Shown here one piece after another: positions 4,532-37,417 of a stretch of 64,000 nt of DNA. The stretch is from contig QPMI01000090.1 in the NCBI GenBank assembly GCA_004431415.1, positions 95,560 through 159,559 on the forward strand. Direction: 5' to 3'. The DNA is from Cyanophora paradoxa CCMP329 (lineage: Eukaryota > Plantae > Glaucophyta). A program made the translations under genes and the position numbers. Within the stretch, counting starts at the first letter, position 1. Every line of letters starts with the position of its first letter. The notes under the pieces are model-generated. The model saw only the letters and a list, made by a program, of their open reading frames with translations, was not told the origin of the DNA and made no database searches.

Positions 4532-7500
4532 CTACATCTGGGTCCCCAAGAACGCTGCTCGCGATCGGAGAAGCGACGGTGAGGGGCGAGAACGGTGGCG
4601 GCGGGGGCGGGAGAAGGGATGCGGGGGCACCGTAGTAGCAGATGGGGACGGCGAGGACCTGCGCCCTCGTCGTCAGCCGAGCGTCCGGCGGGTCGCGATC
4701 GACGGCGCGCAGCGGTCGAGCACCATGCAGATGCACTGCAGGGGGAAGCCGAACTTGGTGTAGTCGAGGAAGCGGTAGCCGCCGGGCTTCTGCACCATCA
4801 GGTTCGTCTGCGGGGCGGGGCGCGTCAGCTGCCGGCAGGGCGGGGCTGGAGCTCGAGGGCGCGGGGGCGGGCCTGGTAGCCGATGGGGGTGGAGAAGTCG
4901 TGGGAGCCGGCGAGCATGAGGACGTAGACGATGGTCTTGAGGGCGACCTTCCCCTTGAGGATGTTGTACACGATCGGGAAGATGAGCGCCACGCACGCCT
5001 GGCCCGGCCCCGCGCACGCGCGTCAGGCGGGCGGCCCGGCCAGACGAGGGCGGGGGCGGCGGGGGCGGCGGGGCGGACGGCGTTGGTGATGACGGCGTTG
5101 AGGAGGACGGAGGCGATGTAGACGCCGAAGAGGAGGCCCAGCTCGGAGCCCTGCGCCCCGCCCCGGCCCCCGAGCCTCAGCTCGAGCCGGCGCGCCCCGG
5201 CGCGGGCGGGCGCGCCTTGAAGATGTCAACGACCGAGTCGGCGAAGGTGCGGGCGAGGAGGGAGCGCTCGAGGGCCGTCCCCACCCCGAACGCGCACGCT
5301 GCGCACGCGAGCGCGCCGCCGCGTCAGACGGGGCCCTCGCCCCGATCCCGCGGGGCGCGGGGCGGGGCGGCACCGATGCAGAGGAGGACGTCGGCGTTGA
5401 TGTAGGAGAGGGCGCGCCGCGGCCGCACGACCTGCGCGGGGCGGGCGGGAGGTCAGCGCCAGGGCAGGGGCGGGGGCAGGGGCAGGGGCGGGGGCGGGGG
5501 CGGGGGCGGGGGCGGGGGCGGGGGCGCCTTGAAGGCCATCATGAGGAAGGCGGCGACGAGGACGGTGTGCGTCAGCGACGGCTTGTTCTGCGCCCCCCGC
5601 ACCCGTCAGGCGCGAGGCCCCGCGGACGCAAGGGGGCGGCGGGGCGCGCCTGGGCGGCGGTGGCGGTCCAGGCCTGGTACCAGAGGGCCGAGACCTCGTC
5701 CGAGACGGAGGGGAAGACGCTGCGCGCGGGGCCGCCGCGTCACCCGCCGAGGCCGCGCGGGGCGGGGGCGCGCGGGGGCGGCGTGCGGACATCATGCCGA
5801 TGGTGAGGAAGGCGGCGGCGGCCATCTTGAAGAAGGACGGGCGGTTGACGAAGCGCGCCGCGTCGTCCAGCTCCGTCACCTGGCCCCGGCTCAGCGAGGG
5901 GCGGCGCGGCGCCGGGCGGTCGGGGGCAGCGCACGACAGAGAACTCGGGGCGGTGGCGCTGCGCGTCGACGACGGCCGGCGGGCAGGCGACGAGCAGCCC
6001 GTCCCCGCCGAGGAGCGGCGTATCCGCCACGGGCGTCGTGATCACCTGCTCCAGCCGCTGGATGCCCAGCACCAGGGCCCCCACCTGGCCGCCGCAGCCC
6101 GTCAGCCCGTGCCGCGCTCGGCGCTGGCGCGGAGCGGAGGGGAAGGCACCTCGGTACAAAGGCGGAGCTCGCGGGGGGTCTTGCCGGCGTACGGCGAGTT
6201 GGAGGCGACGGAGAAGTCCTGGGCGGGGGTGAGGCGGGGGCGCAAAGGGGCGCGCGCGGGAGCGAAGGGGCGCACGGCGAGGGTGAGGCCCTCGCTGCCC
6301 TTCTGCTTCAGCACGGTCTCCTCGAAGCGCGTGAGCTGCATTCGCCTCGATCAGCGCGCGCAAGCCCGCCTCTCCACCGAAGCAAACGCGCTCGCACCCG
6401 CTCGCGGGCGACGGAGAGGCCGTCGGCCTTCATGAGCTCCTTGATGGCGTACTCGGGGCCCCTGCAGGAAACGGCGCGTCAGGGCGATGCGCCTCGACCC
6501 GACGCAGAGCGAGGCGGGCGGCGCACGTGTACTGGATCACGTCGCCGAGGGCGACGGTGGCGGCGCTGACGTCGAAGTCGCGCGCCGCGAAGGTGCGCCC
6601 GTCGCGCGCTGCCGGCGCGGCGGCGTGAGGCGACCGACGTGGACGGCGCGCGGGCGCGGCCGAGGCGGCTCCGGGCCACTCACAGATCCAGAGGATGGAC
6701 GTGGCGGTCACGCTCTCGAGCCCGGACTCCTTGTACGACTTGCCGACGATCTTGGACCGCTTCGTGACCTGGCAGCGCGGCTTGCACTTAGACGAACCAT
6801 CGAGAGCTGCGACGCGAGCAAGAAGGCGCTGACCTGCATGGTGACCTGGTACTTGCGGGTGCTCTTCTCCGCTTCAGCGTCCGCCACCGACTTCCTGCGT
6901 CCGAGGGCCGGTCGGCGGGCTGGCGCGCGTGCGCGTGCGCTCTCTTGGGCGGTGGAGGGGAGGGAGGGGGGACCTGTTGGGGAGGATGACGGGCCCGAGG
7001 GCGACGAGGTAGATGAGGCCGGCGATGGCGCAGGGGAGGCCGGCGATGCCGATCTCGAAGAGGTTGCCGAGGTTGAGCTTCGGCTCGCGCGCCTTGGCCA
7101 GGTTGTACGCGATCAGGTTGATCGACGTCCCGATGTACGAGCACGAGCCGCCCAGGATCGTCGCGAACTGCCGCCGCGCGAGCGGACTCAGCTGGAGAAC
7201 GATGCCCATGGAGGCGCGAGGGGACTCGGGGGAGGGGCGCTCGCAGCGGCGCACGCTCATCGGCATCTGCAGGTACGACGGCGCAATCCCCGTCCGCTTG
7301 GAGTACCTGCCGAGGGGGGGGGAATCCTCAGAATGCACGCAAATATTCTGAAACTGTCTTGAGCGCACGATGAGATGATGGGGATCATCATGGCCACGAT
7401 CGGCGTGTTGTTCTGGCACACGGGGCGGCGCCGTGAGCGCGCGCGAGCAAAGCCAACGGGGCGAGCGCTGGAGAGGCGGCTGGGCGCACGAGGAAGGTGC

Positions 7501-8982
7501 TGAGGAAGATGCAGGCGAGGCCGATGCGCAGGATCGCTATCCGCTTCGACTTGGGGTTCCCGAGCACCCTGCAGACACGGCGAAGTTATATTGAAATTGA
7601 GGCGAATTCAATGAAATTAGGGCTTCGCGCGCGAATGAATTATTCAATCTGTGCTTCCGGAGTTCGGGCGCGGGGGCGCACCGGCGGAGGGCGTAGTCGA
7701 GGGCGCCGGTCTCCTCGATGCCGGCGGCGATGACGAAGAGCACGCCGACCTGGCGGCGCGCGGCGGGGGCGGGGTCACGGCCCGCGGCGCGCGAGCGTGC
7801 CCCGCGGCGAGGGCGGACCTGGAAGACGCCGGCGTTGGAGAAGCCGGCGAGGGCGTCGGCCTGGGAGATGATGTCTGCGGGGCGCGCTCGGCGTCAGCGG
7901 CACGCAGCCGGCGGGGGCGGCGCGCGGGTCGCCGGCACCGAAGAGGAGGGCGGCGGTGAGGGCGGCGAGGAACGAGAGGCCGGCGGAGAAGTCCTTGACC
8001 AGCGCGAACATCAGCCTGCCGGCCCGGGGCGCGCTCAGCGCCCGCTCGAGGCTCCGACAGGGGTCGGCCGGGCCGGGGGGCCGCGGCCGCACATGCTCAC
8101 CCGTACAGGATGACGAGCATCACGTGGCCCTTCCACTTCAGCTTGTCCTTCCAGACGGTGCTGCGGTGGCGCAGCTCATGGTCAGCAGGAGAACGGCGCA
8201 AGCGCAAGCTTGCGGTGCCGGCGAAAATAGAGCGGGCTGCGCACTTGGCCAGCGTCCCGAAGAAGATGGCGTAGCAAACCGTGGCGATCTGAGATGGGGT
8301 TGTGCGGTGAGATCGGGCTTGAGGCGCGCTGGTCCCGCCTGATCACAGAGGGCCGGGCGCACGATGGCGATCTTGTGCTTCCTGAGGAAGGCGAGGAAGC
8401 CGTCGCGGGTGAAGAAGCGCGCGACGGCGGCCTTCTTCTCCGCGAAGAAGTCGCTCGCCTGCCGCGCCACGTGCCCGCCCTTCGAGGGCCGCTTGTTCAC
8501 CAGGAACTCGCTCTCGAACGAGTTCTCCGAGGCCGGCGGTATGGGAATGCTGCGCGCGGGGCGTGAGCGACAGCTGCAGTTCCGCGTCTACGGTGTACGC
8601 CGCGCCGGCCGTGCACGTGGCGCGCGCACCGCTCCGCGTACGGCCGCTCGGGCGGGGTCAGCTCGCTCTCAAACTCGAATGTCTTGGTCTCTTGGCCGCT
8701 GCTCGTCGCGACGATAGGCGCCGAAGTCCAGCGGGACTGCCAGGAGTCGTGGTCCACTGCCGGTAGCGCTACGTGTGCCCTGCCATTGCCATCAGACGCG
8801 AGCGCACGAAAGCCGAGTGTGTGCACGAGTGCGCACCCTTCCTTCTTCCACTTAGATTCATCGATCACGCTCTGAAGCTCGGCGCGCCGCTGCTGGTCGG
8901 CCTCAAGGTCGAGAACTACTGCGGCCGGGGCCGTCGGCCGCGCGTCGGCGGCGGGCGCGCCGCTTGTCGATGCTGGAGCCAT
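4532..8982 (-). CDS. SLC13-family permease with TrkA-C domains (SAC1/SLT-like putative Na+/sulfate cotransporter), many exons
   Basis: Motifs include LFVIAAGIEETGAL, FATILGGSCSYIGTSINL, a TrkA-C-like segment VASNSPYAGKT...LVLGIQR...LLGGDGLLV, ITNAACVALIFPI and [33 protein letters not shown]. ATG at 8982 (MAPAST...); stop after ...YYAFLGTQM. Confidence 0.88.
5461..5526. repeat. Intronic hexamer tandem repeat (GGGGCR)n
   Basis: ggggca/ggggcg units inside an SLC13 intron. Confidence 0.85.
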
Positions 8983-12272: not shown

Positions 12273-15200
12273 ATGGACTTCTTCCGCGACGACCGGGAGG
12301 CCAAGGCGCGCGAGATCCTCGGCGATCTCCACGGCATCGATCGCATCGTCAAGCAGGCGCGCCCGGACGCGCCCGCGCAATGAGCTGAAACATTTTTCTC
12401 CCGTGCGCGGATCATGATCGCTGCAGCAGATCGTGAAGACGCAGGAGAAGGCGCTCGAGGACTGGGAGAAGGCCGAAATCGCGCTGGCCGAGGCTTGGGA
12501 GGAGAAACGGCCGCGGGCGCAGGGCACCGGCTCCGACCGCGCCGGCGACCGCAAGCCGGATGCGACGCTCCTCTCCGTCAGCATGTGGTCTGTAGATTTT
12601 TTTGAAGGCTGGAAGGGCTTCCTGTGCACGTGGCGGTCGTTTAAATTTCCTTGACGATTCGGACCGCGGTCGTTAATTCGGGCCCGGCCCCGCAGCGCGG
12701 ACATGGACAAGGCGACGAAGGCCGTTCTGAAGGACGGCGAGAAAATTCGCTTCTGTGCGCATTCTCGAGCATCCGATCGCGATGACCCAAATTAAAAACG
12801 CTGTTGATTTGAGCTTGCTGTTATAATTAGCCGCACTTGCACTGCGGCAGCCGGCGCCGTGCAAAATAATTGCAGCTGCAGCCAGCATTTTAATTTCGCG
12901 CGCATGTTAGATATCGATAAAAGATTGATGTTCGCTCATTCGAATTCTCATCAATATTTTCTCTTGTGCATACGTATACAGATTCCGTGCTCAAATATCT
13001 GGTGCGTCCGGTGCCTTCCAGCTGCAGGCCTAGGAGCTCGTAATCGTGCCGGCGCCCGTGCTAATTTTTACAAACAACTAAAATTCAACGACGGGGCAGG
13101 ATTTGGTGCGGGACGCGGAAGGGAAGTACCGGCTGGTAAGCTGCCTCAGGCTCTCTAATGATCTAGATATGCGCTTTCGCGCTAGCGCTCTCCGGGGCGG
13201 CGTCTGAGCGGGGGGCGCGGGGCGGGGGCCGGGGCAGTACCACCGGAAGGCGAGCCCCGTGGCGGTGGAGGAGGGCGCGGGGGGCCGCGGCGCCGAGCTC
13301 TCCGAGCTCGTCGTCTTCAACGGCGACCTCCTCACGGCGCGCGCGCGTCTACTATATATTCGATTCCATGTTCGACCCGCTTTCGAAGGGACTTGCGCTG
13401 ACCGAGGGGGCAGGTGGACGACCGGACGGGGATTGTGTACGCGGTGCAGGACCCGCTCGGGTCCGGGGCGGGGGCCGGGCACGTCCACGGGAGCCTCGTG
13501 AAGCGGGCGGAGCTCGGCACCGCCGCCGGCGAGCTCGAGGGGGCCCACGGGCACGGGCACGGGCGCCCCTTCAAGGCCGAGTGGGCCCTCGTCAAGGACG
13601 GCCGCCTCTTCGTCGGGTTCGAATTTACTCTCGGCCCGTTTAAGCATCTGAATAATCTAAATCTGGAGCTGAGGAGGGACCCGACCCGGGGCGGGGCGCG
13701 GCGACCGGTACCAGGTCCCACGGCAACCTGCAGAAGAAGCGATCCCTTTTCGTCAAGGTCCGTCTGCGCTGCGCATAAACTTTTGAAATATGCGCGCCCT
13801 CAAAGAGAGTCCGACCCGCGCCCTCAGGTCGTCGAGGGGGACTGGCGGGTGCGGACGGAGGACTGGACGGAGCGCTACACCAAGCTCGCCCAGGCGGCCG
13901 GCGTCCCTGCCGGCGTGCGCGCGACCGTCGTCCGGCCTGCAGCTGGCCCCGAGAGAAAGAAGTGTTGCAGTGTAATTGGCCGGTTCGTTCGCAGGGGTAC
14001 TGCGTGTTCGAGGCGGCCGAGTGGCTCGAGGAGCAGCGGAAGTGGATATTCCTCCCGCGCCGCGTCGTCCGCGGTGCGCATGCGAGAATCGATATCTTTC
14101 TAAACGCACAAGCTCAAGCAGCTCGAAAATTTAAATTGAAAATTTTCTCGTCGAAGTTGGAAATGCGCCTCATATCTAGATTTGATTTGCTGGGGGCGCA
14201 GAGGGGGCGACGGCGGAGGCGCTGCTGCCCTTCACGGGCTCGAACCTCCTCCTGGAGGCCGACGAGGACTTCGCCGCCGTCCGCCCCGCCCAGGCCCGGC
14301 CCCGCCCCGGCCCCCGGAGCCCGCGATAAAACCGGACGCGTACGTACGCGACGGGACTCGCTTGAGCTTCGGCGGCATGCGCAGGTCCCGCTGGCCAACG
14401 AGCCCTCGCGCACCTTCTCGACCGTCAAGGCCGTCCCCGGGTTCGAATTCGCGGAGCCGGGCCCGGAGCCGCGCTCGATTGCAAATTAATTATTTTATTT
14501 GGTTGGAACCTTGCAGCGGGCTCGAGCACACGTTTTCCAATTCTAGGTCGACCTCTCAATCTAAATCTAGATCTAACAGGTGCCGCAGCTTCCCTGGAGA
14601 GCTCCTGGCGCTCAAGACCGTCGAGGCGCGCCGCGCGCCCCGGCCCCGCCCCGGGGGGCCCGCCCTTTGATTTCTCTCAACCCGACTTTGACCTCCTGAT
14701 CGCTCGACCTCGGCCAGTTCGACACGGAGTGCTCGACGTACGTGGCGACCTTCGGGGCCGACGGGCGCCTCCTCCTCCCCGAGACCTTCGTCTGCGCCGC
14801 CAAGTTCGAGGGCGCGCCACGTGCCCGTGCACCCCGCCGCCGCGCGCGCCCCTCGCTCGAGCCCCGAGAGATAGCGGAGATCAAGAGTCGTGCGCCTGCA
14901 CCTGGGTCGACCCCATCATGATCATAAGCTTCGGGGGGCGCAGGGCTCGCCGTGACCAAGTCCGAGGCGGTGGCGACGCGGGACGTCGAGCGTGCGAGCC
15001 CGATCGCGAGCCCAAGCTTGAGCTCGAGCCGGCGGCGCCGAGCACGAGCGCGAATCGCGTCGAGTTGATCAGCGAGCGCAGTACCTGCGAAACTGGAGGC
15101 GGCCGCCGCCGCCTCTCGCCGCAGCATCGACGACGCGACGAGGGTGATCATGATCGAGTTCGAATTCGCCGCGAAAAACATTAGAGCGACGGCTGGCGTT

Positions 15201-20015: not shown

Positions 20016-22331
20016 ATGCGGCCTGCTGAGAAAGCAGCGCTGCTGTTGCTGCTGGGCCTGTGCGCAAGCCCTGCGTTCGCGTGGTGGGCTGTCGGACACC
20101 AGGTGGTGGCGGAGGTCGCGTTTCGCAACATTAAACAGTCCAGCGCCGATCGCATCGCGGAGCTTATAAAGGGTGCGACATTTTTTCCCCTTAGTCTCGT
20201 CCTTTCTCGTGTACGCGCGCCGCGCCGCCGACCAAGCGCGCGCAGTCTTTACGGACGAGTACCCGACCTTTACGTCGATATCCGACCTTGCTACATGGCC
20301 AGATGACATTAAGGAGCACGGTAGGGAAGTTCCAAAGCCTGCAGCTGCGGCGGCCCTGCTGACCGTCGGCAAGGGGTCGGCGTGTATGATGCCTGGCATT
20401 TCATCGACATCCCCATCGCCCCGGACCCCAGCTACGCCCCGAATTGCCCGCCTCAGTCCCAGAACGTCGTCTGGAGCACGAACTCGGCACGCCCTTTCCC
20501 GTGCCCTCTCCCGGCAGCAAGCCGCGCCCTCTCACGCACGCGCGCCCCCTCTGCACCAGGCGCTCTCCATCTTGAAGAGCGCCCGGGCGACGAAGTTTGA
20601 GAAGGCCACGTTCCTCAAGTGCGCCTGCGCCGGCCCCGCCCGCCCGCTGCGCGCTGCCCGCGCCGAGCTGAACGTTCCCCCTCGGCAGCTTCCTCATCCA
20701 CTTCGTGGGTGCGCGCCTCCGCCGCCGCCTCGCGTGGGGCGCTCGTGCGGCTCACCGGCGCGGGCTCGCAGGCGACTCGCACCAGCCGCTCCACTGCTCC
20801 ACCCTCTACAGCGCCGTGCGCCTGCAGCCCGGCGCTACGCAATCCGCGCGGCTCCGCGCTGACACTGCACCCGGCCGCAGGACTTTCCGGATGGGGTACG
20901 CAAATTCCGAGGGTCCTCGCGATCCGCCAACCCGCCCCACAGGACCGCGGCGGCAACAAGTTCATCCTCCCAAGTGCGTCTGGCCCACGCGCCGGTACCC
21001 GTGTCCTGCTCACTCACTCCTGCAGGCGGCAACCTGCACGCGCTCTGGGACGGCGGATTCGGCCTCTTTGTCGGGTAAGGGGCGCGGGTCCCGCCGCCGG
21101 CCAGTGCCCGACCAGTAACCCGTACCCCCGCAGGCAGGCGAGGCACCCGACGGACGAGTCGACGAAGGAGCGCCTCGCGAAGATCGCCGACGACGTGACG
21201 GCCATGTACCCCCCGTCCTCCCTCGCCGCGGAGCTCGCCGTGAAGGTGGGTCCTCTCTCGTCTACCGGGGGGTGCGGGAGCGGGACTGGGCGGGGCAGGA
21301 CGCGATGGAGTGGGCGAGGGGCAGCGCGGGGGTCGGGGAGTGGGCGCGGGCGGCGCTGCCCGAGGGCCGGCGCCCCTCGGGGGCCTACCTCAACGCCTCG
21401 CTCTCCGCCGTGCGGCGGCAGGCGGCCCTTGCCGGCTACCGCCTCGCCGCCGCCCTCGACGAGGCCTTCGCCGCCGAGGCCCTCGCCGTTGCGGCCGACG
21501 CGGCGGCCCGGGCGCTGCTGCGGCCCTGGCCCGAGGCGGCCGGCTCGGAGGCGGGGCGCCGGGCCCGGGCCTTCGCGGTGGGGCGCGGCCTCTCCGTCGC
21601 CGCCTTCTTCACCCTCCTCGCCGGCCTCGCCTCCTTCCGCTTCCTCCTCCGCCGCCGCCGCGCCCGCGCCCGGCGGCGGCCCGCCCGACGGCGCCCGCCC
21701 CGCACGCGCGGCCGCCCGCCCCCGCGCACCTCCTGGCGGCCCCTCGCGGAGCCGGCCGGCGCGCCCGCAACAGGAGCAGGAGCAGCAGCAGCAGCAGCAG
21801 CACAGGCACAGGACGAGGGCGGCGGCGGCGGCGGCGGGGCGGCAGCCGAGCAGTAGGGCGGTCCGCAGGCGCCGCCGAATCGAACCGAACGGGCCGAACG
21901 GGCGCTCTCGAAGCTCCGCTAAGGCGGGGGTCTAGCTATAGCGCGGGGGGGCAGGCCGATGGCGAGCGGGGTCCGGGGGCGGGCTCTGACGGGGCGCTCC
22001 GGGCAGGACTTCCAGGGGTGGGCCGACGGCGTCCACAAGGTCGCCCAGGACGTGCGCCGCCCCGTCAACCGAGCCGCCTGCGCGCCCCGCGGGTCCTGTC
22101 CCCTGACGACCCCCCCCGCAGGTGGTGTACAACGGGATCCGGGAGGGGGAGAAGCCGTCGCAGGGGTACCTGGACACGGGGATCCGCACGGTGAAGCGGC
22201 AGATGGCGCTCGCGGGGTACCGCCTCGCCTCGCTCCTGGACCAGGCCCTCGCCAACGCCGCGCCCTTGTCCGCCCACCCCCGCCGCGACGCCGCCGTCCC
22301 GCCCCTCCGCGGCCACGCCGGCGACGTCTAG
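20016..22331 (+). CDS. S1/P1 nuclease with signal peptide and two alternative 3' exon sets (21299-21856 with TM anchor; 22007-22051 + 22122-22331 soluble)
   Basis: Signal peptide ending AFA, then mature WWAVGHQVVA; WPDDIK; WHFID; FLIHFVGDSHQPLH; DRGGN; NLHALWD (zinc-ligand motifs). The terminal helix motif QxALAGYRLAxxLD occurs twice, once in each alternative 3' exon set. Confidence 0.93.
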
Positions 22332-28191: not shown

Positions 28192-28301
28192 TAGGGGTAC
28201 GCGACTGAAGATTGGGGTACGACTCTCCACTGGCCATTTCGTTCTCTGCGACGTCGGGTTGGCGTTACAAGTTGTAGAATCGTTGCGAACCTGTTGGGAA
28301 G
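28192..28301. promoter_or_regulatory. Putative bidirectional promoter between FHA gene and RlpA-LysM gene
   Basis: 110 bp between the divergent ATGs, lower GC than the flanking exons. Confidence 0.5.
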
Positions 28302-29276
28302 ATGCCACAGCAGCGGGTCTGCCGCAGCAACTGCGCGTCGAAGATGTGGCAAGGCTTGCAGGGGCAGCGTACTTTCTCCGGTGAGCCCTACTCGGACGGG
28401 GGCTTCACAGCGGCGCACCGGACACATGCGATGGGAACAAAGCGTACGTAGAGCGCGTAGGCGATCGGCACTCCTGCGTGCGCTGATCGGCATCCGGAAA
28501 TCTGCAGTGAAGGTGACAAACCTGTGGAATCAGCGCTCAGTGGTCGTCAAGGTGAATGACAGGGGTCCATTTGGATCGGCGGTGAGCGTTGATTCAAATC
28601 TCACTTGCTGCTGCGCGATCTTATCTTTGTCTAGGCGCGGATCATCGACCTGAGCGGGGCGGCGGCGCGGGCCATCGGCCTGACGACGGGGAGCGTGCCC
28701 GTTTCGATTACCGTGGCAGCGCCGGCGCCAGCTAAGAGCGGCTCCCCCGCGCGGCCGGCCTCAGCTGGCGCGCAATCAGCCTCGTCGAAGGCCGCCCCTG
28801 GTGCCAGTGCTTCGAAGGGCGCCCCGGCAGCCCCGGCGGCGCCGGCAGCGGGCAAGCACGTCGTGCGGGCCGGCGACTCGCTGTGGACGATCGCGGCGCA
28901 GCACAAGACGACTGTGGCGCAGCTGCAGAAGCTCAACCCGGGCGTGACCACGGCGCTCACCATCGGCCAGTCCGTCGCCGTCGGGCCCGCCGCGCCCGCC
29001 GCCGCTCCCCCCGCCGCGACCCCTGCAGCGGCCCGCAAGCCGAGCGCCGCGCCCGCCCCCGCGCGGCCCGCGACCGCCCCGCCGCGGCCGGCGACCGCCC
29101 CGCCCCGGCCGGCGGCGGCGCCGGCGGCCTCCGGGGCGCACAAGTACACGATCCGGCCGGGAGACTGCCTGTGGACGATCGCGGGGCGGCACAAGACGAC
29201 GGTGGCGGAGCTGCGGAAGGCGAACCCGGGCCTCACCAACGACCTCACCGTCGGCAACGCCATCAACGTCAAGTGA
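28302..29276 (+). CDS. rlpA: RlpA-like double-psi beta-barrel (septal lytic transglycosylase family) fused to two LysM domains
   Basis: Three exons give ...[28 protein letters not shown]|[24 protein letters not shown]|[17 protein letters not shown] Pro/Ala linker leads to Lys[28 protein letters not shown] and Lys[28 protein letters not shown]. Confidence 0.92.
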
Positions 29277-29581: not shown

Positions 29582-32500
29582 CTAGTCGGACTCGCGGTCT
29601 GAGCCGTAGTCGGAGCCGTCGCCCGAGCCGGCCGCCGCTGCAGCGCCCGTGTACGGCTCGAAGGGCAGCGGGCCGTGCTCGGCGATGCTGAACAGAAGCG
29701 TCAGGCGGAGCTCGATCGCCAGGAGGCTCGAGGGGAGGGGCGCGGGGGGCACGGCACCTGTCGAAGAGCCACTTGTGGCGGACGACAGGGGGCGCCTTGC
29801 GGCCGCCGGCGCCGGCTGCGGGGGCGAGCTCCGGGTCCTCGCAGAGGACCACGCTCGCCTTGCCCGCGTCCTTCTCCAGCTGCCCGCCGCCCGGCCCCGT
29901 GAGCCCGGGCGCGCCCCTGCGGCGGATCCGGGCCGCTCTCCCCCGCGCACCGTGGCGCCGGCGGCGGCGATGAGGGCGTGCAGGAGGGGCGCCTGCAGCT
30001 GGAGCGGCGGCTCGCCCGCCGTCGCGATGCGGTACCCCTTCAGGATGCGGCGGCCCTCCTCCGGGGCCGGCACGTTGAAGGCGGTGTTCGCGTAGGGCTC
30101 GACGGGGAGCCAGCGGCGCGCCTCGGCCGAGTCCAGCACCCACTCGTGCCGCACGATGGCCGCGCCCCGCGCGATGCCGTAGAGGACCTGCCGGCTAAGT
30201 CGGCCCCAGCCGCACGGGGGGCGCGGCGGGCCCGGACCTTGTACGTGCGCATGGGGCCGGCGGTGACGACGTGGGTGATGGAGGGCAGGGGCGCCTTCCT
30301 GTGCGAGATGCGCACCCCGCCGACCGCCCGCGCCGCCTCCACGATCTGCCGGCCCGGCCGCGTCAGGCCGGGGGAGCAAAGCGCGGGCCCCGGGAGGGTG
30401 GCCGCCGCTCGCCTGCCTGCGGGCGCCCTCGTCGGCCCCAGAGATGCAGATCACGACTCTGGCGGCCGAGCCCGACGACTCCGCCCCCCCCGCCGCCTTG
30501 GTCGCCCTCCCCTTCGCCGCTGGCCGCTTCGGCGGCGCCGGCGCCGGGCTCTCCGGCTCAGCAGCCGCCGCCCCCTCCGCGCCCGGGGCGTCGCGGGGCG
30601 GCGGCGGCCGGCGGGGCCGCGGGCGGGGTCGCGGGGCGGCGGCCTGGCGGGCGGCGCGGCCGGCGGCGATGGCGGCGGCGATGGAGGCCTGGAGGGCCTC
30701 GGAGAGGGCGAGGCGGCCGGCCGCCCCTCGCCCTCGCCCTCGGCCCCGCCCTCGGCCTCGCCTTCGCCCAGTCGGGGGCCTGGGACGCCTCGAGCTGGCC
30801 CGTGAGGGCGCGGATCTCCCCCGCGTCCCCGGCCGCCAGCGCCCGCGTCAGCGCCCCAGCAGCGCCCGCAGCCGCCCCTCCGCCTCCTCCCGCCGCCGCC
30901 GCTCCGCCTTCAGCTCCCGCCGCAGCGCCGACGGCCGCCCCCCTTGCGAGGCGCCCGCCGCCCCCGCCCCCGCCTCCTCCGCCTCGGGGGCCCCGGGGAG
31001 GCTGTCGGGGGGCATCACGAGGGCCCGCACGGGGCTCATCGGCGTCGCCTCGACGTCCGCCTCCTGCGCCCCCGCCGGCGTCGCCTTCGCCTTCTCGAGG
31101 GCGGAGGGGCCCGCGCCGGGCCCGGCGTGTTCCGCGCGTCCCCCGCGTTCTCGTCCTGCGCTGCCGCCGGTGTTGCCGTCGGCCGCGCCGGCGTCGCCGC
31201 GGGCCGCGCCGGCGTCTCCGCGGGCCGCGCCGGCGTCGCGGCGGGCCGCAGCGGGGCCGTCGTGCGCCGCCGCTTGCGCCGGTCCTCCTCCGCCCGCCGC
31301 TCCTCGCGCCGTCGCGCCGCCTCGCGCCGCACCAGCGCCGCCCGCATCGCTGCGGCCCGTGAGCGGGGCGCGCCGGCGGGCGGGGCGGCGCGGGGCGGGC
31401 GGACCGGCCTGGAGGACGACGATGGCCTCCCAGCGGCGGTCTGCCTCGCAGCAGGCGATCCACATGCGCACGTTGCGCTGCACGACGGCCGCCGCCCGCC
31501 CCCGCGCCTCCCCGAGGCGCTTCTCCAGCCACCGCACCGGCACCTCCTTCAGGAACACCCGCGACTTGCCCACCTGGCGGGGGGCGATCAGGCGCCGGCG
31601 GGCTCCAACCCTTGCAGGTCGCGGGGCGCGCGCCTGCCAGGCGGGGAGGAGCCGCTTCTGGGCGCCGAGGTGGGCGGGGCCCTCGGCGGGCCGGGGCATG
31701 CCCTGCGCCTCGAGGCAGCCCAGCGCGCGCTGGACGAGGGGCGCCGCGGGGGCGCCCGCGGCGGAGGCGACGTCCCGCGGCAGCACCGGCCGGTACCTGC
31801 GGGGGCGCGCGTGAGCGGGTACGGCGGCGGCGCAAGCGAGCGGGGGGCACCGGCGGAGGAAGTCGGGGAAGGGGAGGGAGGCGGCGTAGGCGGCGGAGGC
31901 GACCTGGACGGCCTCCACGAGGCCCGAGCAGCGCATCTGCTGCAGCAGCAGCGCCGCCTGCACCGCCGGCGCCGCCCCGTCCGCGGCCGCCTCGGGGGCC
32001 GGCTTCATGCAGCGGATGAAGTGCGCGTCGCTGGCGGCGATGGTCCGCAGCAGCGAGTCGAGCTGTCCCTTGAACTGGGCGAAGACGGAGAGGGCGCGGG
32101 CCTTTGAGGGCCCCGGGCGGGCGGCGGCCCCGGCGGCGGCGGCGGCGGAGGGGGGCGGGCGGGTGGAGGAGAGCTGGGCGAGGCGGGCGGCGGCGCGGAG
32201 GAGCGGGGAGCGGGAGGAGGCGAGGAGGGCGAGGAGCTCGGGGGAGACGGCGTCCCGGTTCCTCGCCACGAACCCCGCCGTGTCGTACGTCACCTGCGCC
32301 CGGTCGGACCCGCGCCGCTGCGGTCTGCGGGGGGTCGGGGGCGCGGCGCGGCGCGCACGTCGCCGGCGTAGTGGCGGAGGGTGAAGGCCCCCGGGCTGAA
32401 CTTGGCCCGCGCGTAGCTCGGGTGCTCCCCGAAGGCCGCGTGCAGCTTCTCCGCCAGCGCCTTGTCGCTCCCGCCTGCCCCGCCCCCGCCGTCAACTCAG

Positions 32501-34661
32501 CGCTCGGGCGCGGCTCGGCCCAATTCCGCGGCGGGGAGCTCGCGCGCACCCGGGAGGCCGCACTGCTCCTCGAGGAGGGCGACGAGGCCGGCGCCGGGGC
32601 GCTCGAGGAGCTCGCCGCAGGCCCTCGCGGCGCCCGGCGGGGGCGTCGCCTCCCACTCGATCCCCTCGCGCACGTACTCGAGCTGCTGCCCCGCGATCGC
32701 CGCCTCGTTGAAGTGCTGCTGCAGCTTCTCGTTCGCGTAGTTGATGCACAGCTGCTCGAACCCGTTCCCCTGCACCTGCCCCGGCCCCCGCTCGCTCCCG
32801 GGCCGAGGGGGACTCAGGGGCGGAAGGCGGACCTCCATGTTCTCGAACCCGAAGATGTCGAGGATGCCGATGAGGGGCGCCCCCGCCGCGCCCTCGGCCC
32901 CCGCCGCGCCCTCGGCCCCCGCCCACTCGTCGTCGTCCGCGCCGCCGGCGGCGGCCCCGGCCCGGCGGGGGCGAGGGCGGCGTTGACGCGGGCGGCAAGG
33001 GAGCGGAAGAGCCGGCGTAGAGGGCCATGCAGAGCGAGTCCCGCGCCTGCCCCGCCTCCCGCGGCGACAGCGTCCGCGCGAACGACGACCCGCCCGACCC
33101 GCCCGCCGTCGCCCGCCGCACCGTCAGCGCCTCCACCAGCGCCCCCCGCCCGCCCGGCAGCGCCAGCAGCTCCGCCGCCGCCCCGAGCTCCCGCAGGCAC
33201 TCCTCGGGGAGCGCGCAGGCGTCCCCGTGGCCCGACCCGGACTCGAAGCGGGCGTTGCCGAGGCGGAGGATGGCGGCGAGGGCCCGCAGCGCCTCCCGGC
33301 GCCCCTCCTCTCGCACCCCGAAGGCCTCCAGGGCGGCCATCGTGCGGGCGAAGCCGGCGGCGTCGGCGGCGCGCTCGGCGGGCGGGCAGGCCTCGTGTGT
33401 GGCGCCGGCGAGGAGGCGGTAGGCGGCGGGGTCGTCGGACTCGAGGGAGAGCTCGGCGAGGAGGGCCGGGCCGGCGCCGGCGAGCAGCTGGTAGAAGACG
33501 TGGAAGCTCCGCTCCCCGGGCGCGTGCCCCGCTACCCGGCACTTCTCCAGCAGGTCTGGCCGGGGCCGCCGTGAGGCCCGCCCCGCGTGGAGCGCCGGGG
33601 CGGGGGCGGGCGGAACGCACAGGTGTCGATGTGGGCCCCCGCGATGGTGCGGCCGGTCGGGTCGAACCAGATCTGGGCGACGGTCGAGGGGGCGGGCGGG
33701 GGGGAGGGAGGGCCCCCGGCGGGGCGCACCTTGACGAACTTGCCGAAGCGTGAGGAGTTGGCGTTGCGGCACGTCCGCGCGTTTCCGAAGGCCTCCAGGA
33801 TCGGGTTCGACGCCAGCACCCGCTCCTGCCACCCCCCGCCCCGGCTCGACGCGCAGGCGGGGTGAACGATGGCGGAACGGTCACCTGGACGCTGCGGCCG
33901 GCGCACGAGGCGGCCGCGCGGCCGCTCGCCCGGCTCGTGAGGTACTCCAGGATGTATTTCTGCGGGCGCTGTGAGTGGCATGGGATTGATTCGAGCAGAA
34001 GAAGCGAGCTCGCCGTCGTCTCTGTCTTGCCCGCGCCGCTGTCGCCACTGCGCGAGGCAGCTGAGAGCGCGCGGCGCGGCTGGCGGCGCGGCGGCGCGGA
34101 GGACCTGATCAAGATGGACTGGGGCTTCTTGTCTGCGTGCGAGCTCAGCGGCGGCCGGCGGGCCCCAGGGTGCGCTCGCGCACCGCGGAGCATGCGGCGG
34201 TAGGCGCGCTCGGCGAGGAAGTAGACGTGCGGGACGACCTCGTCGTCGGCCGCCTCCGCGACCGCCTCGCGCGCCTCCTGGCAGTAGATGTCCAGCTGCC
34301 GGTACGGGTTGACGGCGACCAGGATCTCCCCCGCGAACGTGTAGATCTCGCCGGCGTCGAAGCGCGCGGTGATCCGGTCCAGCAGCTCCGCCTCGTTCTT
34401 GTGGACGCAGGAGCGCAGGCTGCGGAGCTCGTTTAGCGCCCCCGCCTCGCTACAGGCGTCGGGGCGGCCTGCGGAAACGCACTCGGGCGCGAGCGCCTCG
34501 GGGCACGGGTCGCGCTCCAGTGTGCGCTCCTTCGGGCCGAGCGCCCTACACGAGCCGTCTTCTAGCCGGACCATACCGTTCGGCATCCGAGTCGCCTGCA
34601 CATAGCGGCCCTCGCGGGTGAACAGCCAGATCGGAGCGGGTGGCTCCGCGGGCCCCGCCAT
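29582..34661 (-). CDS. Unconventional myosin: motor domain + IQ motifs + low-complexity/helical tail + C-terminal tandem BRCT
   Basis: Motor motifs [116 protein letters not shown] and [10 protein letters not shown]-like VVQRNVRMW and VLQAAMRAAL. BRCT motifs [22 protein letters not shown]...WVLDS and [11 protein letters not shown]. The link between the tail and the BRCTs crosses about 3-4 single-base frameshifts. Confidence 0.85.
31165..31250 (-). repeat. 21-nt coding tandem repeat (PAxTPAR)n in the myosin tail
   Basis: [28 protein letters not shown]. Confidence 0.8.
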
Positions 34662-34807: not shown

Positions 34808-37417
34808 ATGAAGCGGTCGCGGGGCCAAGGGATGGTGAGTCGGCGCCCTTCTGTGCGACGCTCTGCACGCGTTGACTCTGCGCAGGAACCCCTCGCGGAG
34901 CGAGACCTGAATGCGCCGCCCGCACACGGCACCGCGAAGCAGCAGCCCCCTGTAAGGCGTTACAAGATTGGAGAGAGCCGGCTGCATGCCGCACGCTTGC
35001 GGGCTAGGACGCGGCGGGCGGCAGGCCAGGCGGCTGCAGCCGACCCGAGCACCCCGCAGCGCTCGTCCGGCCTTCCCGTGAGCGACGATGCAGCGGAAAC
35101 GCCGGGAACGGAGGCAAACGAGGTCGAGGCGAACGCCAGCCCCGCACAAGCTCCAGCTCCCGCACAAGCACTGAGCAGCAGCCCTGCTCAGGCGCCCACG
35201 CAGGCCACCAGCGCGCGTAGATCCAAAGCGAACGCAGAGCCCGAGCCCGAGCTTGTGCAGCAGAAGACGGAGGCGTGCAGAGAGCTGCCAGCGGGCGGGC
35301 CGCAGCCCTCGCCAGGGCGGACGCAGCCGGATCGTAGGCGGCACGCCATTCCACGGCGGCGTACGGGTGCCTCGGTGCGCTCGGAAGAATCCACGCCCGC
35401 TACTGGCGCTCAGACCCCTCGCGTCGCTCGGGCCGGCCTGGCTCCCGCGGAGCCAGGGCAGCATGCGTCGGATGCCGCGGCGGCTTCGTCCGCCGCGCCG
35501 CCCCCGCCGGCGTCAGGCTGCGAAGGCGCGGCGGTGCCGGTGGCCCTTGCCTCGCCTGCACGCCGTCCTCCAACCCTGCCATCCGGCGGGCCCGCGTCGA
35601 TTGCCCAGTCCCCTGCCCCCGCCTCCCAGCCCGCTACCCCCGCCAGCGGCCGGGCGCCTCCGCCCCCTGCCCGCCGCGCCGCGCCTCCCCCCGTTCCACC
35701 TCCGCCCCCCTCAGCATCCTCCGTCCCCGTCCCCGGCCCCTCCGCCTTCCCTCCCCCTCCTCCGCCTCCGCCTCCGCCGGCCCCGCTCGTCTCCTCCTCG
35801 TCCAACCCGCCACGTGTCCCCCCGCCCCTCATACCTTCTCTCCGGTCCCCCGCAGCGCCCTCTCGAACGACGGGCGAGACCGCTCGACCTCCCCCTCCCC
35901 CGCCGCCGTGTCCGGCCGCCCCGCCTGCCCCCGCCCCCTCCTCCGGCGGCCGCCGCCGGCGCTGGCCCTCCCTGCCCCACCGCCGCCGCCGGGCGCTTCT
36001 CGGCCTGCCGTCGCCGCGTTCCCGCCCCCGCCGCCCCCGCCCGGCTGCCCTGGCCCAGGCCGCCGCCGCTACCTCCGGTGCCCCTCCGCCACCCCACCGC
36101 ACGGCGCTGCCCCACTAGCCCTCCCGGAGTCCCGCCGCCGCCGCCGCCTCGGGCGCCCCGTGCGTCGCCCCTCCCCCAGCCAAGGTCCGCTCCGCCACCC
36201 GTCCACCGGCTCCTTCTCCACTCAAGCCGCGCCGCGCAGTCCGCCGTTCGCCGGCCCTCGTCGCCCTCATGCAGCGCCTCATGCGGGCGAAGCGCGAGGG
36301 CGGCGCCCCGGCCGCCTCGCCGGCCGTGCTGGCCGGCGCGGCGGGGGCGGGGCGGCGGCCCCCGCCGGGCCTTCGCGGCCCAGAAGGCGGCCGTGATTGA
36401 GGAGCTCAAGCGCAGGCGCGCCAGCGCCCGAACTCAGCGGGGGTGCGCCGGCTGAGCGGGGCGGGGCGCGCAGGTCGAAGCACCTGGCGCGCGTGCAGCG
36501 GGAGGCGGAGGAGCACGGCCCGCGGCTGCGCGCCCTCGCCGCCGCGGTCGCCGCCTTCTCCTGCCGCGACGAGGCGGCCCTGCTCGCCTTCCACAGGTCC
36601 GCCCCGCCCCCTCCTGCGGGGCGCGGGGCCGCCGGCGACGCCTCCCGCGCAGGGAGGTGGAGGCGGCGCTGGCGCCGCTGGAGGACGAGGCGCGGACGGC
36701 CGCCCTCTGCTGCCCCGAGGCGCGTGGCCCGCCCAGAAGCTCGCCGACATCCGCGGCGCCGCCTCCCGGCGAGCCCCCGCACGCCCAGCGCCCCTGCTTC
36801 GATGCCGCCGCTGACGCGGGGGCAGGACGCTCGGGCTGCGGGAGCTCATCGCCCGCGTCGAGGCCTGGAGCGCCGAGGCGGGGGGCCCCGCGGGGGCCCG
36901 CCCTCCCCCGCCGACGAGCAGGTCGCTGCCGCGGCGCGGGCGCGGCGGGGAGGGCCTCTGAGCGGGGCGGGCGGGGCAGGTGGCGCGGGCGGCGGCGTGC
37001 TTCGACGCGGCGAAGCGGCAGCTCGAGGCCGCGAGCGCTCCCGCGACGAGGAGCTCAGGCGGTGCGCCTCTCCGGCCGGCCCCGGCGCCGGCGTGCCCCG
37101 GGGCCGGCGGCTGAGGGGGGCGGGCGGGCAGGTTCAAGGCGAGCGGGCTCCACTTCGACGCGGGGCTCTTCACGCGGGCCAAGCACGCCGCCATCCGCCC
37201 CGCTGAGGCGGCCGTGCGGGCGGCCGTGGCCGAGGGGCGGCGGGCGCGCGAGGCGGCGGCGACGGCGGCGCGGCGGAAGGCGGCGGGGGCGACGCTCTTC
37301 AGGGCCCTCGCGCTGGCGCAGCGGGCGTACGTGCTCGCCGGCGGGGCCGACGGGCGGCTCGAGGCGGCCGTCTCCGAGCTCGCCGAGCTCCTCGGCGACG
37401 CGCAGGCCTGGCTCTAG
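34808..37417 (+). CDS. CHUP1/IPGA1-like protein: disordered N-terminus, polyproline (FH1-like) region, CHUP1 C-terminal domain
   Basis: VIEELKRRSKHLARVQREAEEHG..LRALAAAV...DEAALLAFHREVEAALAPLEDE...WPAQKLADIRGAA, SRDEELRRFKASGLHFD and LFRALALAQRAYVLAGGAD match, in order, the CHUP1-C motifs as I recall them (IxEIxNRS, DLLAFV..LDEELxxLVDE, WPExKxDALREAA, RDxxxxRYKEFGIPVD, RFAFRVHQFAGGFD). Multiple poly-Pro tracts lie at ~35480-36200. Confidence 0.82.

Follow-up and report, generated by a model that had tools for sequence, protein, structure and literature searches.

A probable myosin gene with an MCPH1-like tandem BRCT tail in Cyanophora paradoxa

We analyzed a 64,000-nt stretch of DNA from Cyanophora paradoxa CCMP329 (contig QPMI01000090.1), called the window throughout, in which an earlier reading of the letters without database searches (the sequence-only reading) had proposed a myosin fused to a phosphopeptide-type tandem BRCT. 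All coordinates are positions within the window; the gene lies on the minus strand, whose three reading frames are named f0, f1, and f2. The window is eukaryotic and very G+C-rich (0.65-0.82). All of the peptide strings quoted in the sequence-only reading were found on the minus strand, spread over three frames. The best-supported reading of this locus, and one that we consider probable, is a single gene of ~1,366 codons that encodes a myosin motor, an IQ lever, a linker, and a tandem BRCT resembling that of MCPH1. From the N to the C terminus, the protein would contain an SH3-like region, an intact-looking motor, two IQ-like motifs, a linker of ~290 residues, and a C-terminal tandem BRCT. Removal of 16 introns and addition of four single bases gives a corrected coding sequence of 4098 nt (5077 - 983 + 4 = 4098), or 1366 codons, a total length that divides exactly by three. 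Directly visible in the DNA are the domains and their order, together with the splice structure and a continuous coding sequence.

Domains and splice structure of the locus

The gene and the features of its N-terminal part are as follows:

34661-29582, minus strand: whole proposed gene, with the ATG at 34661, the TAG at 29584-29582, and 16 introns
34661-31574, minus strand: N-terminal SH3-like region and myosin motor, from Pfam Myosin_head, tblastn, and motifs
~34046-34023, minus strand: P-loop GDSGAGKT, read after splicing
33765-33739, minus strand: switch I, read after splicing
32859-32842, minus strand: switch II DIFGFE, read after splicing
31498-31454, minus strand: IQ-like motif 1 (Pfam IQ E 0.058, below the cut-off)
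31430-31300, minus strand: IQ-like motif 2, found only across the spliced intron 31404-31350

The Pfam Myosin_head profile (PF00063) matched five pieces of open reading frames (ORFs) on the minus strand between 34661 and 31850 (E 1e-18 to 7.5e-22). All five pieces scored above the cut-off of 33.3 bits, and they cover profile positions 11-81, 121-158, 175-341, 378-454, and 494-634 in succession. A homologue search with the N-terminal motor region returned only myosins (33-42% identity), with no self-match and no BRCT co-occurring among the matches. When four reference myosins from this search (P0026, P0030, P0022, and P0020) were compared to the locus using local tblastn, all were colinear with it across three frames.

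By enumerating frame-compatible GT/GC-AG pairs, we identified eleven introns of 51-75 nt in the motor and lever part of the gene. Splicing restored the motor junctions exactly, both in the N-terminal half (RMLR/DKKPQSILI, KYILEYL, SVQ..., and IWFD) and later in the domain (HIDT-Y-LLEKCRV, HYAGD/YRPVL, and AWQ/VGKSRVFLK). Two of these eleven introns have GC-AG borders, and one of the two, 34013-33960 (donor GCGAGC), is validated by homology (GAGKTETT/KYILEYL). After splicing of the validated introns, the P-loop, switch I, and switch II are all canonical, as judged against the standard motifs GESGAGKT, NxNSSRFGK, and DIxGFE, respectively. The frame of the motor is not uninterrupted, as it breaks at 33018-33008 and at 32974-32925. 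We also observed a micro-exon of 28 nt (34132-34105, minus strand), flanked by introns of 51 and 57 nt, that encodes (D)KKPQSILI(S) just before the P-loop.

Judging from its sequence, the motor appears to fit no single myosin class clearly. When the longest motor exon (33553-33020) was used to search the PDB, myosins of classes VI, I, XV, X, and II matched alike (E 4e-16 to 1e-11), and by eye, a class-VI-type insert is absent after the converter. The two IQ-like motifs described in the sequence-only reading could both be read; however, the first is below the Pfam threshold and the second appears only when intron 31404-31350, the sole frame-compatible GT-AG intron found at this motif, is spliced out.

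The C-terminal part of the gene contains the tandem BRCT, which is split over five exon pieces:

30457-29651, minus strand: tandem BRCT in five exon pieces, from profile alignment
30457-30413 (piece 30484-30413), minus strand: BRCT exon a, carrying ICISG
30345-30238, minus strand: BRCT exon b, ending in MRTYK
30187-29951, minus strand: BRCT exon c, 79 amino acids
29879-29758, minus strand: BRCT exon d, ending in VVRHKWLFD
29687-29651 (piece 29687-29585), minus strand: BRCT exon e; the piece ends in ESD, then TAG
30412-30346 (GC-AG), 30237-30188, 29950-29880, and 29757-29688, minus strand: BRCT introns, frame-compatible joins
30442-30437, minus strand: Ser-Gly, with ICISGAD aligned to the family sequence aItGld
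30249-30238, minus strand: Arg-Thr-Tyr-Lys, with MRTYK aligned to the family sequence skRTlk
29650-29585, minus strand: C-terminal tail, short, Ser/Asp/Gly-rich, and acidic, then the stop

In a PDB search with exon c, the best matches were the C-terminal BRCTs of microcephalin (3szm/3sht, E 4e-4), followed by the BRCTs of XRCC1, BRCA1, and REV1. Exon c matched only BRCT clusters in the ESM Atlas, and a PDB search with exon b alone returned no match. We also used a local hidden Markov model (HMM) built from 10 MCPH1-like tandem-BRCT relatives of exon c. Of all 1157 six-frame stop-to-stop pieces in the window, the HMM matched only those of this locus (exon c, 3.3e-20; exon d, 4.5e-4). The five exons fall on HMM columns 10-22, 45-67, 68-148, 154-184, and 186-201 in colinear order and, since the splice junctions lie between adjacent HMM columns, both the BRCT domain and its introns are validated. 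The colinear mapping to columns 10-201 indicates that the predicted chain carries two head-to-tail BRCT repeats.

In the structures of BRCA1, MDC1, and MCPH1, a Ser-Gly in beta1 and a Thr-x-Lys in alpha2 form the phosphoserine pocket. The Ser-Gly and Arg-Thr-Tyr-Lys of the Cyanophora protein match the (S/T)G and RTxK columns of the family, in alignments that are both short and weak alone. Three observations of the sequence-only reading agree with our analysis: that the BRCT sequence is present, that its SG and RTYK are intact, and that its LxGIARG resembles the C-terminal BRCTs of MCPH1, which were the top PDB matches to exon c. That the domain is split by four introns had gone unremarked. The tandem BRCT appears to be nearest to the MCPH1 C-terminal pair and to be of the phosphoserine-reading type found in MCPH1, MDC1, and BRCA1. 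The N-terminal 1,000-plus residues are those of a myosin, which argues against orthology to MCPH1; by its predicted sequence, the protein is related to the MCPH1-type BRCT pair and is not a microcephalin. Several serines of the acidophilic-kinase type are present in the C-terminal tail (29650-29585), and it is conceivable that a phosphorylated tail could fold back onto its own BRCT pocket, resulting in autoinhibition.

A search of 1.84 billion representative proteins with exon c yielded 11 weak matches. Ten relatives were scanned with Pfam; eight of these carry BRCT, mostly as tandem pairs, and none carries Myosin_head. The BRCT-carrying relatives derive from a red alga, oomycetes, a choanoflagellate, a nematode, and uncultured eukaryotes. 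Two exon-c matches were discarded as spurious bacterial low-complexity matches. A homologue search with the 481-amino-acid f1 ORF returned nothing, as the query was swamped by low-complexity words.

The linker and coding continuity from motor to BRCT

Between the lever and the BRCT lies a linker with the following features:

31349-30458, minus strand: linker from lever to BRCT, low-complexity, charged, Pro/Ala-rich, ~290 codons
31281-31264, minus strand: basic cluster RRKRRR, in a charged stretch of the linker
31269-31165, minus strand: four 21-nt in-frame repeats encoding TPARPA(A/E)
30761-30689, minus strand: linker intron of 73 nt, GC-AG, with donor GCGAGG, a pyrimidine-rich tract, and a CAG acceptor, joining f0 to f1
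30529-30497, minus strand: second basic cluster of 11 residues, in an Ala/Pro-rich stretch of the linker

The repeats are followed by an acidic stretch, a heptad-like segment of 48 residues, and an Ala/Pro-rich remainder. The heptad-like segment, judged by eye, may dimerize the protein, and the two basic clusters resemble nuclear localization signals in sequence. The G+C content of the linker is 0.85 (31349-30455), with a minimum of 0.77 per 60-nt window. As the 21-nt repeats are in frame, they fit coding sequence.

Several lines of evidence connect the motor to the BRCT. Of the codons in confirmed exons, 97-100% end in G or C. This third-position G+C signal (0.9-1.0) is unbroken from ~34450 to 29585, and the frame changes only at introns and at four other points. 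The flanking intergenic G+C is 0.54 after the TAG at 29582 and 0.60 before the ATG at 34661. Between 31400 and 30400, the minus strand contains just three ATG triplets (31347, 31039, and 31015). Since all three are upstream of a TGA at 30850, the BRCT lacks a start codon and an ORF of its own in the assembled sequence. The sequence-only reading had stated that the coding sequence continues from the motor into the BRCT with no promoter-like gap, and we concur: the two parts share one coding block that is not interrupted by intergenic-type sequence, and the BRCT lacks a separate ATG. We infer that a single mRNA spans the gene.

The splice structure is uniform along the gene. All 16 introns are 50-75 nt long, have GT/GC-AG borders, and end in CAG. 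Four of the 16 are GC-AG introns: 34013-33960 (donor GCGAGC), 31633-31574 (GCGCGC), 30761-30689 (GCGAGG), and 30412-30346 (GCGAGC). The linker intron, 30761-30689, is credible because it shares a GCGAG-type donor with the homology-validated motor intron 34013-33960.

Downstream, on the plus strand, a convergent neighbor (28294-29276) encodes a DPBB/RlpA-like piece (E 4.5e-4) and two LysM domains (E 2.5e-22). The presence of this gene indicates that the myosin-BRCT gene ends where the G+C falls. A Pro/Ala-rich linker in the neighbor (29047-29128) is 72% complementary to the TPARPA repeats of the myosin (31163-31244), such that both genes encode similar PARPA-type repeats, each in its own sense. 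On the other side, a divergent neighbor on the plus strand (34808-36118, continuing to ~37400) begins 146 nt away from the ATG of the myosin. Its product would be very rich in proline, with poly-P runs, and none of its six ORF pieces has a Pfam match.

Frame breaks and competing gene models

At four frame changes, no intron offers a clean solution, and each requires one added base:

33018-33008, minus strand: break 1, f1 to f0, inside a conserved motor helix, after ALYA
32974-32925, minus strand: break 2, f0 to f2, in a motor loop; a one-base deletion or a GC-(G)AG intron of 56-74 nt
31130-31105, minus strand: break 3, f2 to f1, at GGG/CCC/CCCC runs; most likely a deletion, or GC-AG intron 31116-31064 (53 nt)
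30858-30848, minus strand: break 4, f1 to f0, at a G4 run; most likely a deletion, the alternatives being GC-AG introns 30865-30795 and 30865-30689

Break 1 can be placed precisely by homology. Residues 364/365 of P0022, and the equivalent residues of P0021 and P0023, align to f1 and f0 without a gap. In the reference, AKELFS/RTFDHIVNRVN is contiguous; in the window, f1 ends in CMALYA and f0 follows without intervening DNA. Since the break falls between adjacent residues, it is an indel and cannot be an intron, and the assembled sequence is therefore unable to encode an intact motor. At the other end of the series, break 4 creates an in-frame TGA (30850-30848) before the BRCT. Runs of three to five C or G bases are present in three of the four break intervals, the exception being 33018-33008.

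To distinguish introns from deletions, we used a position-specific coding-versus-intron score trained on the validated exons and introns. (A frame-tracking HMM could not tell 50-75-nt introns from frameshifts and was dropped.) The candidate intron 31116-31064 scored +5.7, the f0 stretch 30857-30795 scored +6.6, and the stretch at break 2 scored +7.5, values in the range of exons. In the calibration, none of the 16 validated introns exceeded +1.6 even in its best frame, and positive scores were obtained for 32 of 34 exon chunks. Because the disputed stretches score as exon, one-base deletions are favored over introns. The frame from motor to BRCT stays open under every indel or GC-AG solution that we considered. 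The sequence-only reading had listed three frameshifts in this region. Those at ~31120 and ~30855 are likely to be one-base deletions, but the one at 30780-30720 is the 73-nt linker intron. Break 1, anchored by homology within the motor, demonstrates that one-base breaks do arise in this gene.

We favor assembly errors over a decaying gene as the source of these breaks, given the uniform direction of the shifts, the intact splice sites and catalytic motifs, and the undiminished codon bias. It is most likely that the gene is real and that the one-base frame breaks, one to four in number, are deletions introduced by the assembly. A search for a second homology-anchored frameshift in the transporter-like, apyrase-like, and S1/P1 nuclease genes of the window found no usable anchor.

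Several observations weigh against a single intact gene. The assembled sequence interrupts the frame at as many as four points, one of which introduces the TGA between motor and BRCT, and real frameshifts, as in a pseudogene, would fit the raw sequence equally well. Two stretches of the linker, 31347-31117 (+3.5) and 30688-30413 (-1.5), are neutral by the coding-versus-intron score; both are Ala/Pro/Arg-rich and of low complexity. The profile matches of BRCT exons a and b are weak on their own, and single exons fall below the Pfam BRCT cut-off (best, BRCT_2 at 14.8 versus 27.3 bits), because each domain is split by introns. Among the relatives, no orthologous fusion was found, and the closest proteins by BRCT are stand-alone or have architectures of the DNA-damage type. 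The loci of two of these BRCT relatives, P0019 and P0003, contain no myosin in the neighborhood, and a metagenome scan with exon c detected no relative.

Three other models of the locus were considered. One is that there are two genes, the myosin being terminated by the TGA at 30850-30848 or by the stop in f2 at 31038, and a separate BRCT gene following on the same strand. The literal stop codon between motor and BRCT and the stand-alone nature of the nearest BRCT relatives are what such a model predicts. However, no ATG in any frame lies between 31015 and the first BRCT exon, and there is no dip in G+C like the intergenic 0.54-0.60 at the two ends of the gene. Moreover, the codon periodicity passes the stop into f0 for 32 codons and then continues over the intron into the BRCT exon, and f1 is coding already 30 codons upstream of the ATG at 31039. 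We therefore regard two genes as very unlikely, the least probable of the three. In the extra-intron model, no more than one correction would be needed for an intact gene, and the tail-side frame changes would be GC-AG introns (31116-31064, and 30865-30795 or 30865-30689). If the second of these introns were retained, the TGA would be exposed and an isoform without BRCTs would result, making splicing a switch for the tail. The candidates are frame-compatible, end in CAG, are of typical length (53 and 71 nt), and belong to an intron type that accounts for four of the 16 introns in the gene, one of them validated by motor homology. Against this, their scores (+5.7 and +6.6) are those of coding sequence and exceed the score of each of the 16 validated introns; their donors are unlike the other GCGAG/GCGCGC donors of the gene; and the motor break at 33018-33008 would still need an indel. 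This model, too, appears quite improbable.

A pseudogene is somewhat more plausible than either, but still unlikely. Here, a fusion that existed in the past or came about by exon capture would now be decaying, the four breaks would be real mutations, and the locus would make no full-length protein. The assembled motor cannot be intact and the TGA precedes the BRCT; in addition, no protein from this locus was found among the 1.84 billion representatives or in a word-indexed protein search. Decay is less consistent with the absence of in-frame stops other than the shift-created one, with the GT/GC-AG borders kept by all 16 introns, with catalytic motifs that are all intact, and with a third-position G+C that is still 0.97-1.0 in every frame segment. 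Each break would be corrected by the addition of one base, a pattern like systematic sequencing error and unlike random mutation, and C/G runs of three to five bases lie in three of the four intervals. The BRCT block also lacks flanking terminal or direct repeats. Capture of this block by a transposon was considered and rejected, as the search for such flanking repeats gave only low-complexity matches. We conclude that a single gene, with breaks introduced during assembly, remains the preferred reading.

Elsewhere in the window, the transporter-like gene (4676-7875, minus strand) has weak Pfam matches to CitMHS and TrkA_C. Its pieces 4676-4846 and 4840-5022 are in different frames and overlap by 7 nt, which may be another one-base break. 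On the plus strand, 21119-21853 and 22107-22328 both match the same C-terminal part (~198-257) of Pfam S1-P1_nuclease, and 13402-13620 has a weak Pfam Apyrase match.

Relation to known proteins and a proposed function

The BRCT pair has its clearest counterpart in MCPH1 (3SZM, 3SHT/3SHV, and 3U3Z). Exon c aligns to VLLGIARGcwVLsyDWVLwS (E 4e-4), the two-repeat layout is the same, and W-x-x-(D/E)-S-I is present at the end of repeat 2. The proteins differ in that the BRCT pair here ends a myosin, whereas MCPH1 lacks a motor and carries a further BRCT at its N terminus. The Cyanophora protein also differs in having the Lys in R-T-Y-K, as do BRCA1 and MDC1. With the pockets of these two proteins it shares the Ser-Gly (30442-30437) and the Arg-Thr-Tyr-Lys (30249-30238) in the family columns, although direct sequence similarity to BRCA1 is weak (E 0.13-2).

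As a myosin, the protein resembles the orphan myosins of protists: a conventional motor and IQ lever are followed by a tail domain specific to the lineage, and the motor belongs to no clear class. Cyanophora myosins are listed as orphans in one pan-eukaryotic survey (Kollmar and Muehlhausen 2017, PMC5583752). The main texts of this survey and of a second (Sebe-Pedros et al. 2014, PMC3942036) do not mention BRCT, nor do two supplementary files of the former; the difference from the orphan myosins described is that neither survey mentions a BRCT tail. The statement in the sequence-only reading that BRCT is not a known myosin tail is consistent with both surveys and with the lack of myosins among the BRCT relatives. 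A pairing of BRCT with a myosin tail was not found in the literature searched. Within the reach of our protein and literature searches, the combination of a myosin motor with a tandem BRCT is new.

From these motifs, we infer phosphopeptide binding and a role in cargo recognition, as well as a class of ligand and a cell compartment. The motor would move along actin filaments, and the BRCT pair would be its cargo-binding end, docking on a phosphoserine motif via the Ser-Gly/Thr-x-Lys pocket. Under this proposal, the motor would be loaded only when its partner is phosphorylated. As the nearest relative is the gammaH2AX-binding pair of microcephalin, and as the linker contains two clusters that resemble nuclear localization signals, the most specific guess would be recruitment to chromatin or to another nuclear phospho-target. 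The H2AX tail phosphorylated at Ser139 is read primarily by the BRCTs of MCPH1 and MDC1 (PMC12541577). By analogy, the most specific hypothesis, which is a guess, is that the myosin docks directly on a damage-induced phosphoprotein.

Myosins have been linked to damaged chromatin in other systems. In flies, heterochromatic double-strand breaks are moved by nuclear F-actin and by nuclear myosins whose recruitment is indirect and goes through Smc5/6 and Unc45 (Caridi et al. 2018, as reviewed in PMC7481375). Breaks and forks are also sites of action for type-I myosins and myosin VI (PMC12325611, PMC10290672). The Cyanophora protein shares with these myosins the idea of a motor coupled to damaged chromatin; the difference is that here, a reader of the damage-mark type would sit in the motor polypeptide itself. 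In its fullest form, the proposal is that a dimerizing nuclear myosin grips phosphorylated H2AX-like tails or another damage phosphoprotein and hauls broken chromatin along nuclear actin without adaptors. We consider this full version a long shot.

The main functional rival keeps the same architecture and gives it a cytoplasmic job, with the BRCT pair docking the motor on a phosphorylated cytoskeletal or division-plane protein and not on chromatin. BRCT pairs are generic phosphoserine readers; in animal cytokinesis, the BRCTs of ECT2 bind phosphorylated CYK-4. To our knowledge, Archaeplastida lack myosin II, so other myosins may serve division. The gene also lies head-to-head with the proline-rich ORF described above, a neighbor that itself has no Pfam match. 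The nearest relatives by sequence are DNA-damage proteins of the MCPH1 type, and the linker carries two basic clusters of the nuclear localization type, both of which argue against a cytoplasmic role. We view a cytoplasmic target as doubtful, yet less so than the chromatin-hauling version.

Myosin tails decide the cargo of the motor, and a BRCT tail that reads phosphoserine would tie loading directly to a kinase signal. The nearness of this tail to the readers of gammaH2AX suggests that a single polypeptide may link damage signaling to actin-based movement, a link that in animals needs several adaptor proteins. If the motor does recognize a damage mark directly, transport of repair sites by nuclear actomyosin would become testable in an early-branching alga.

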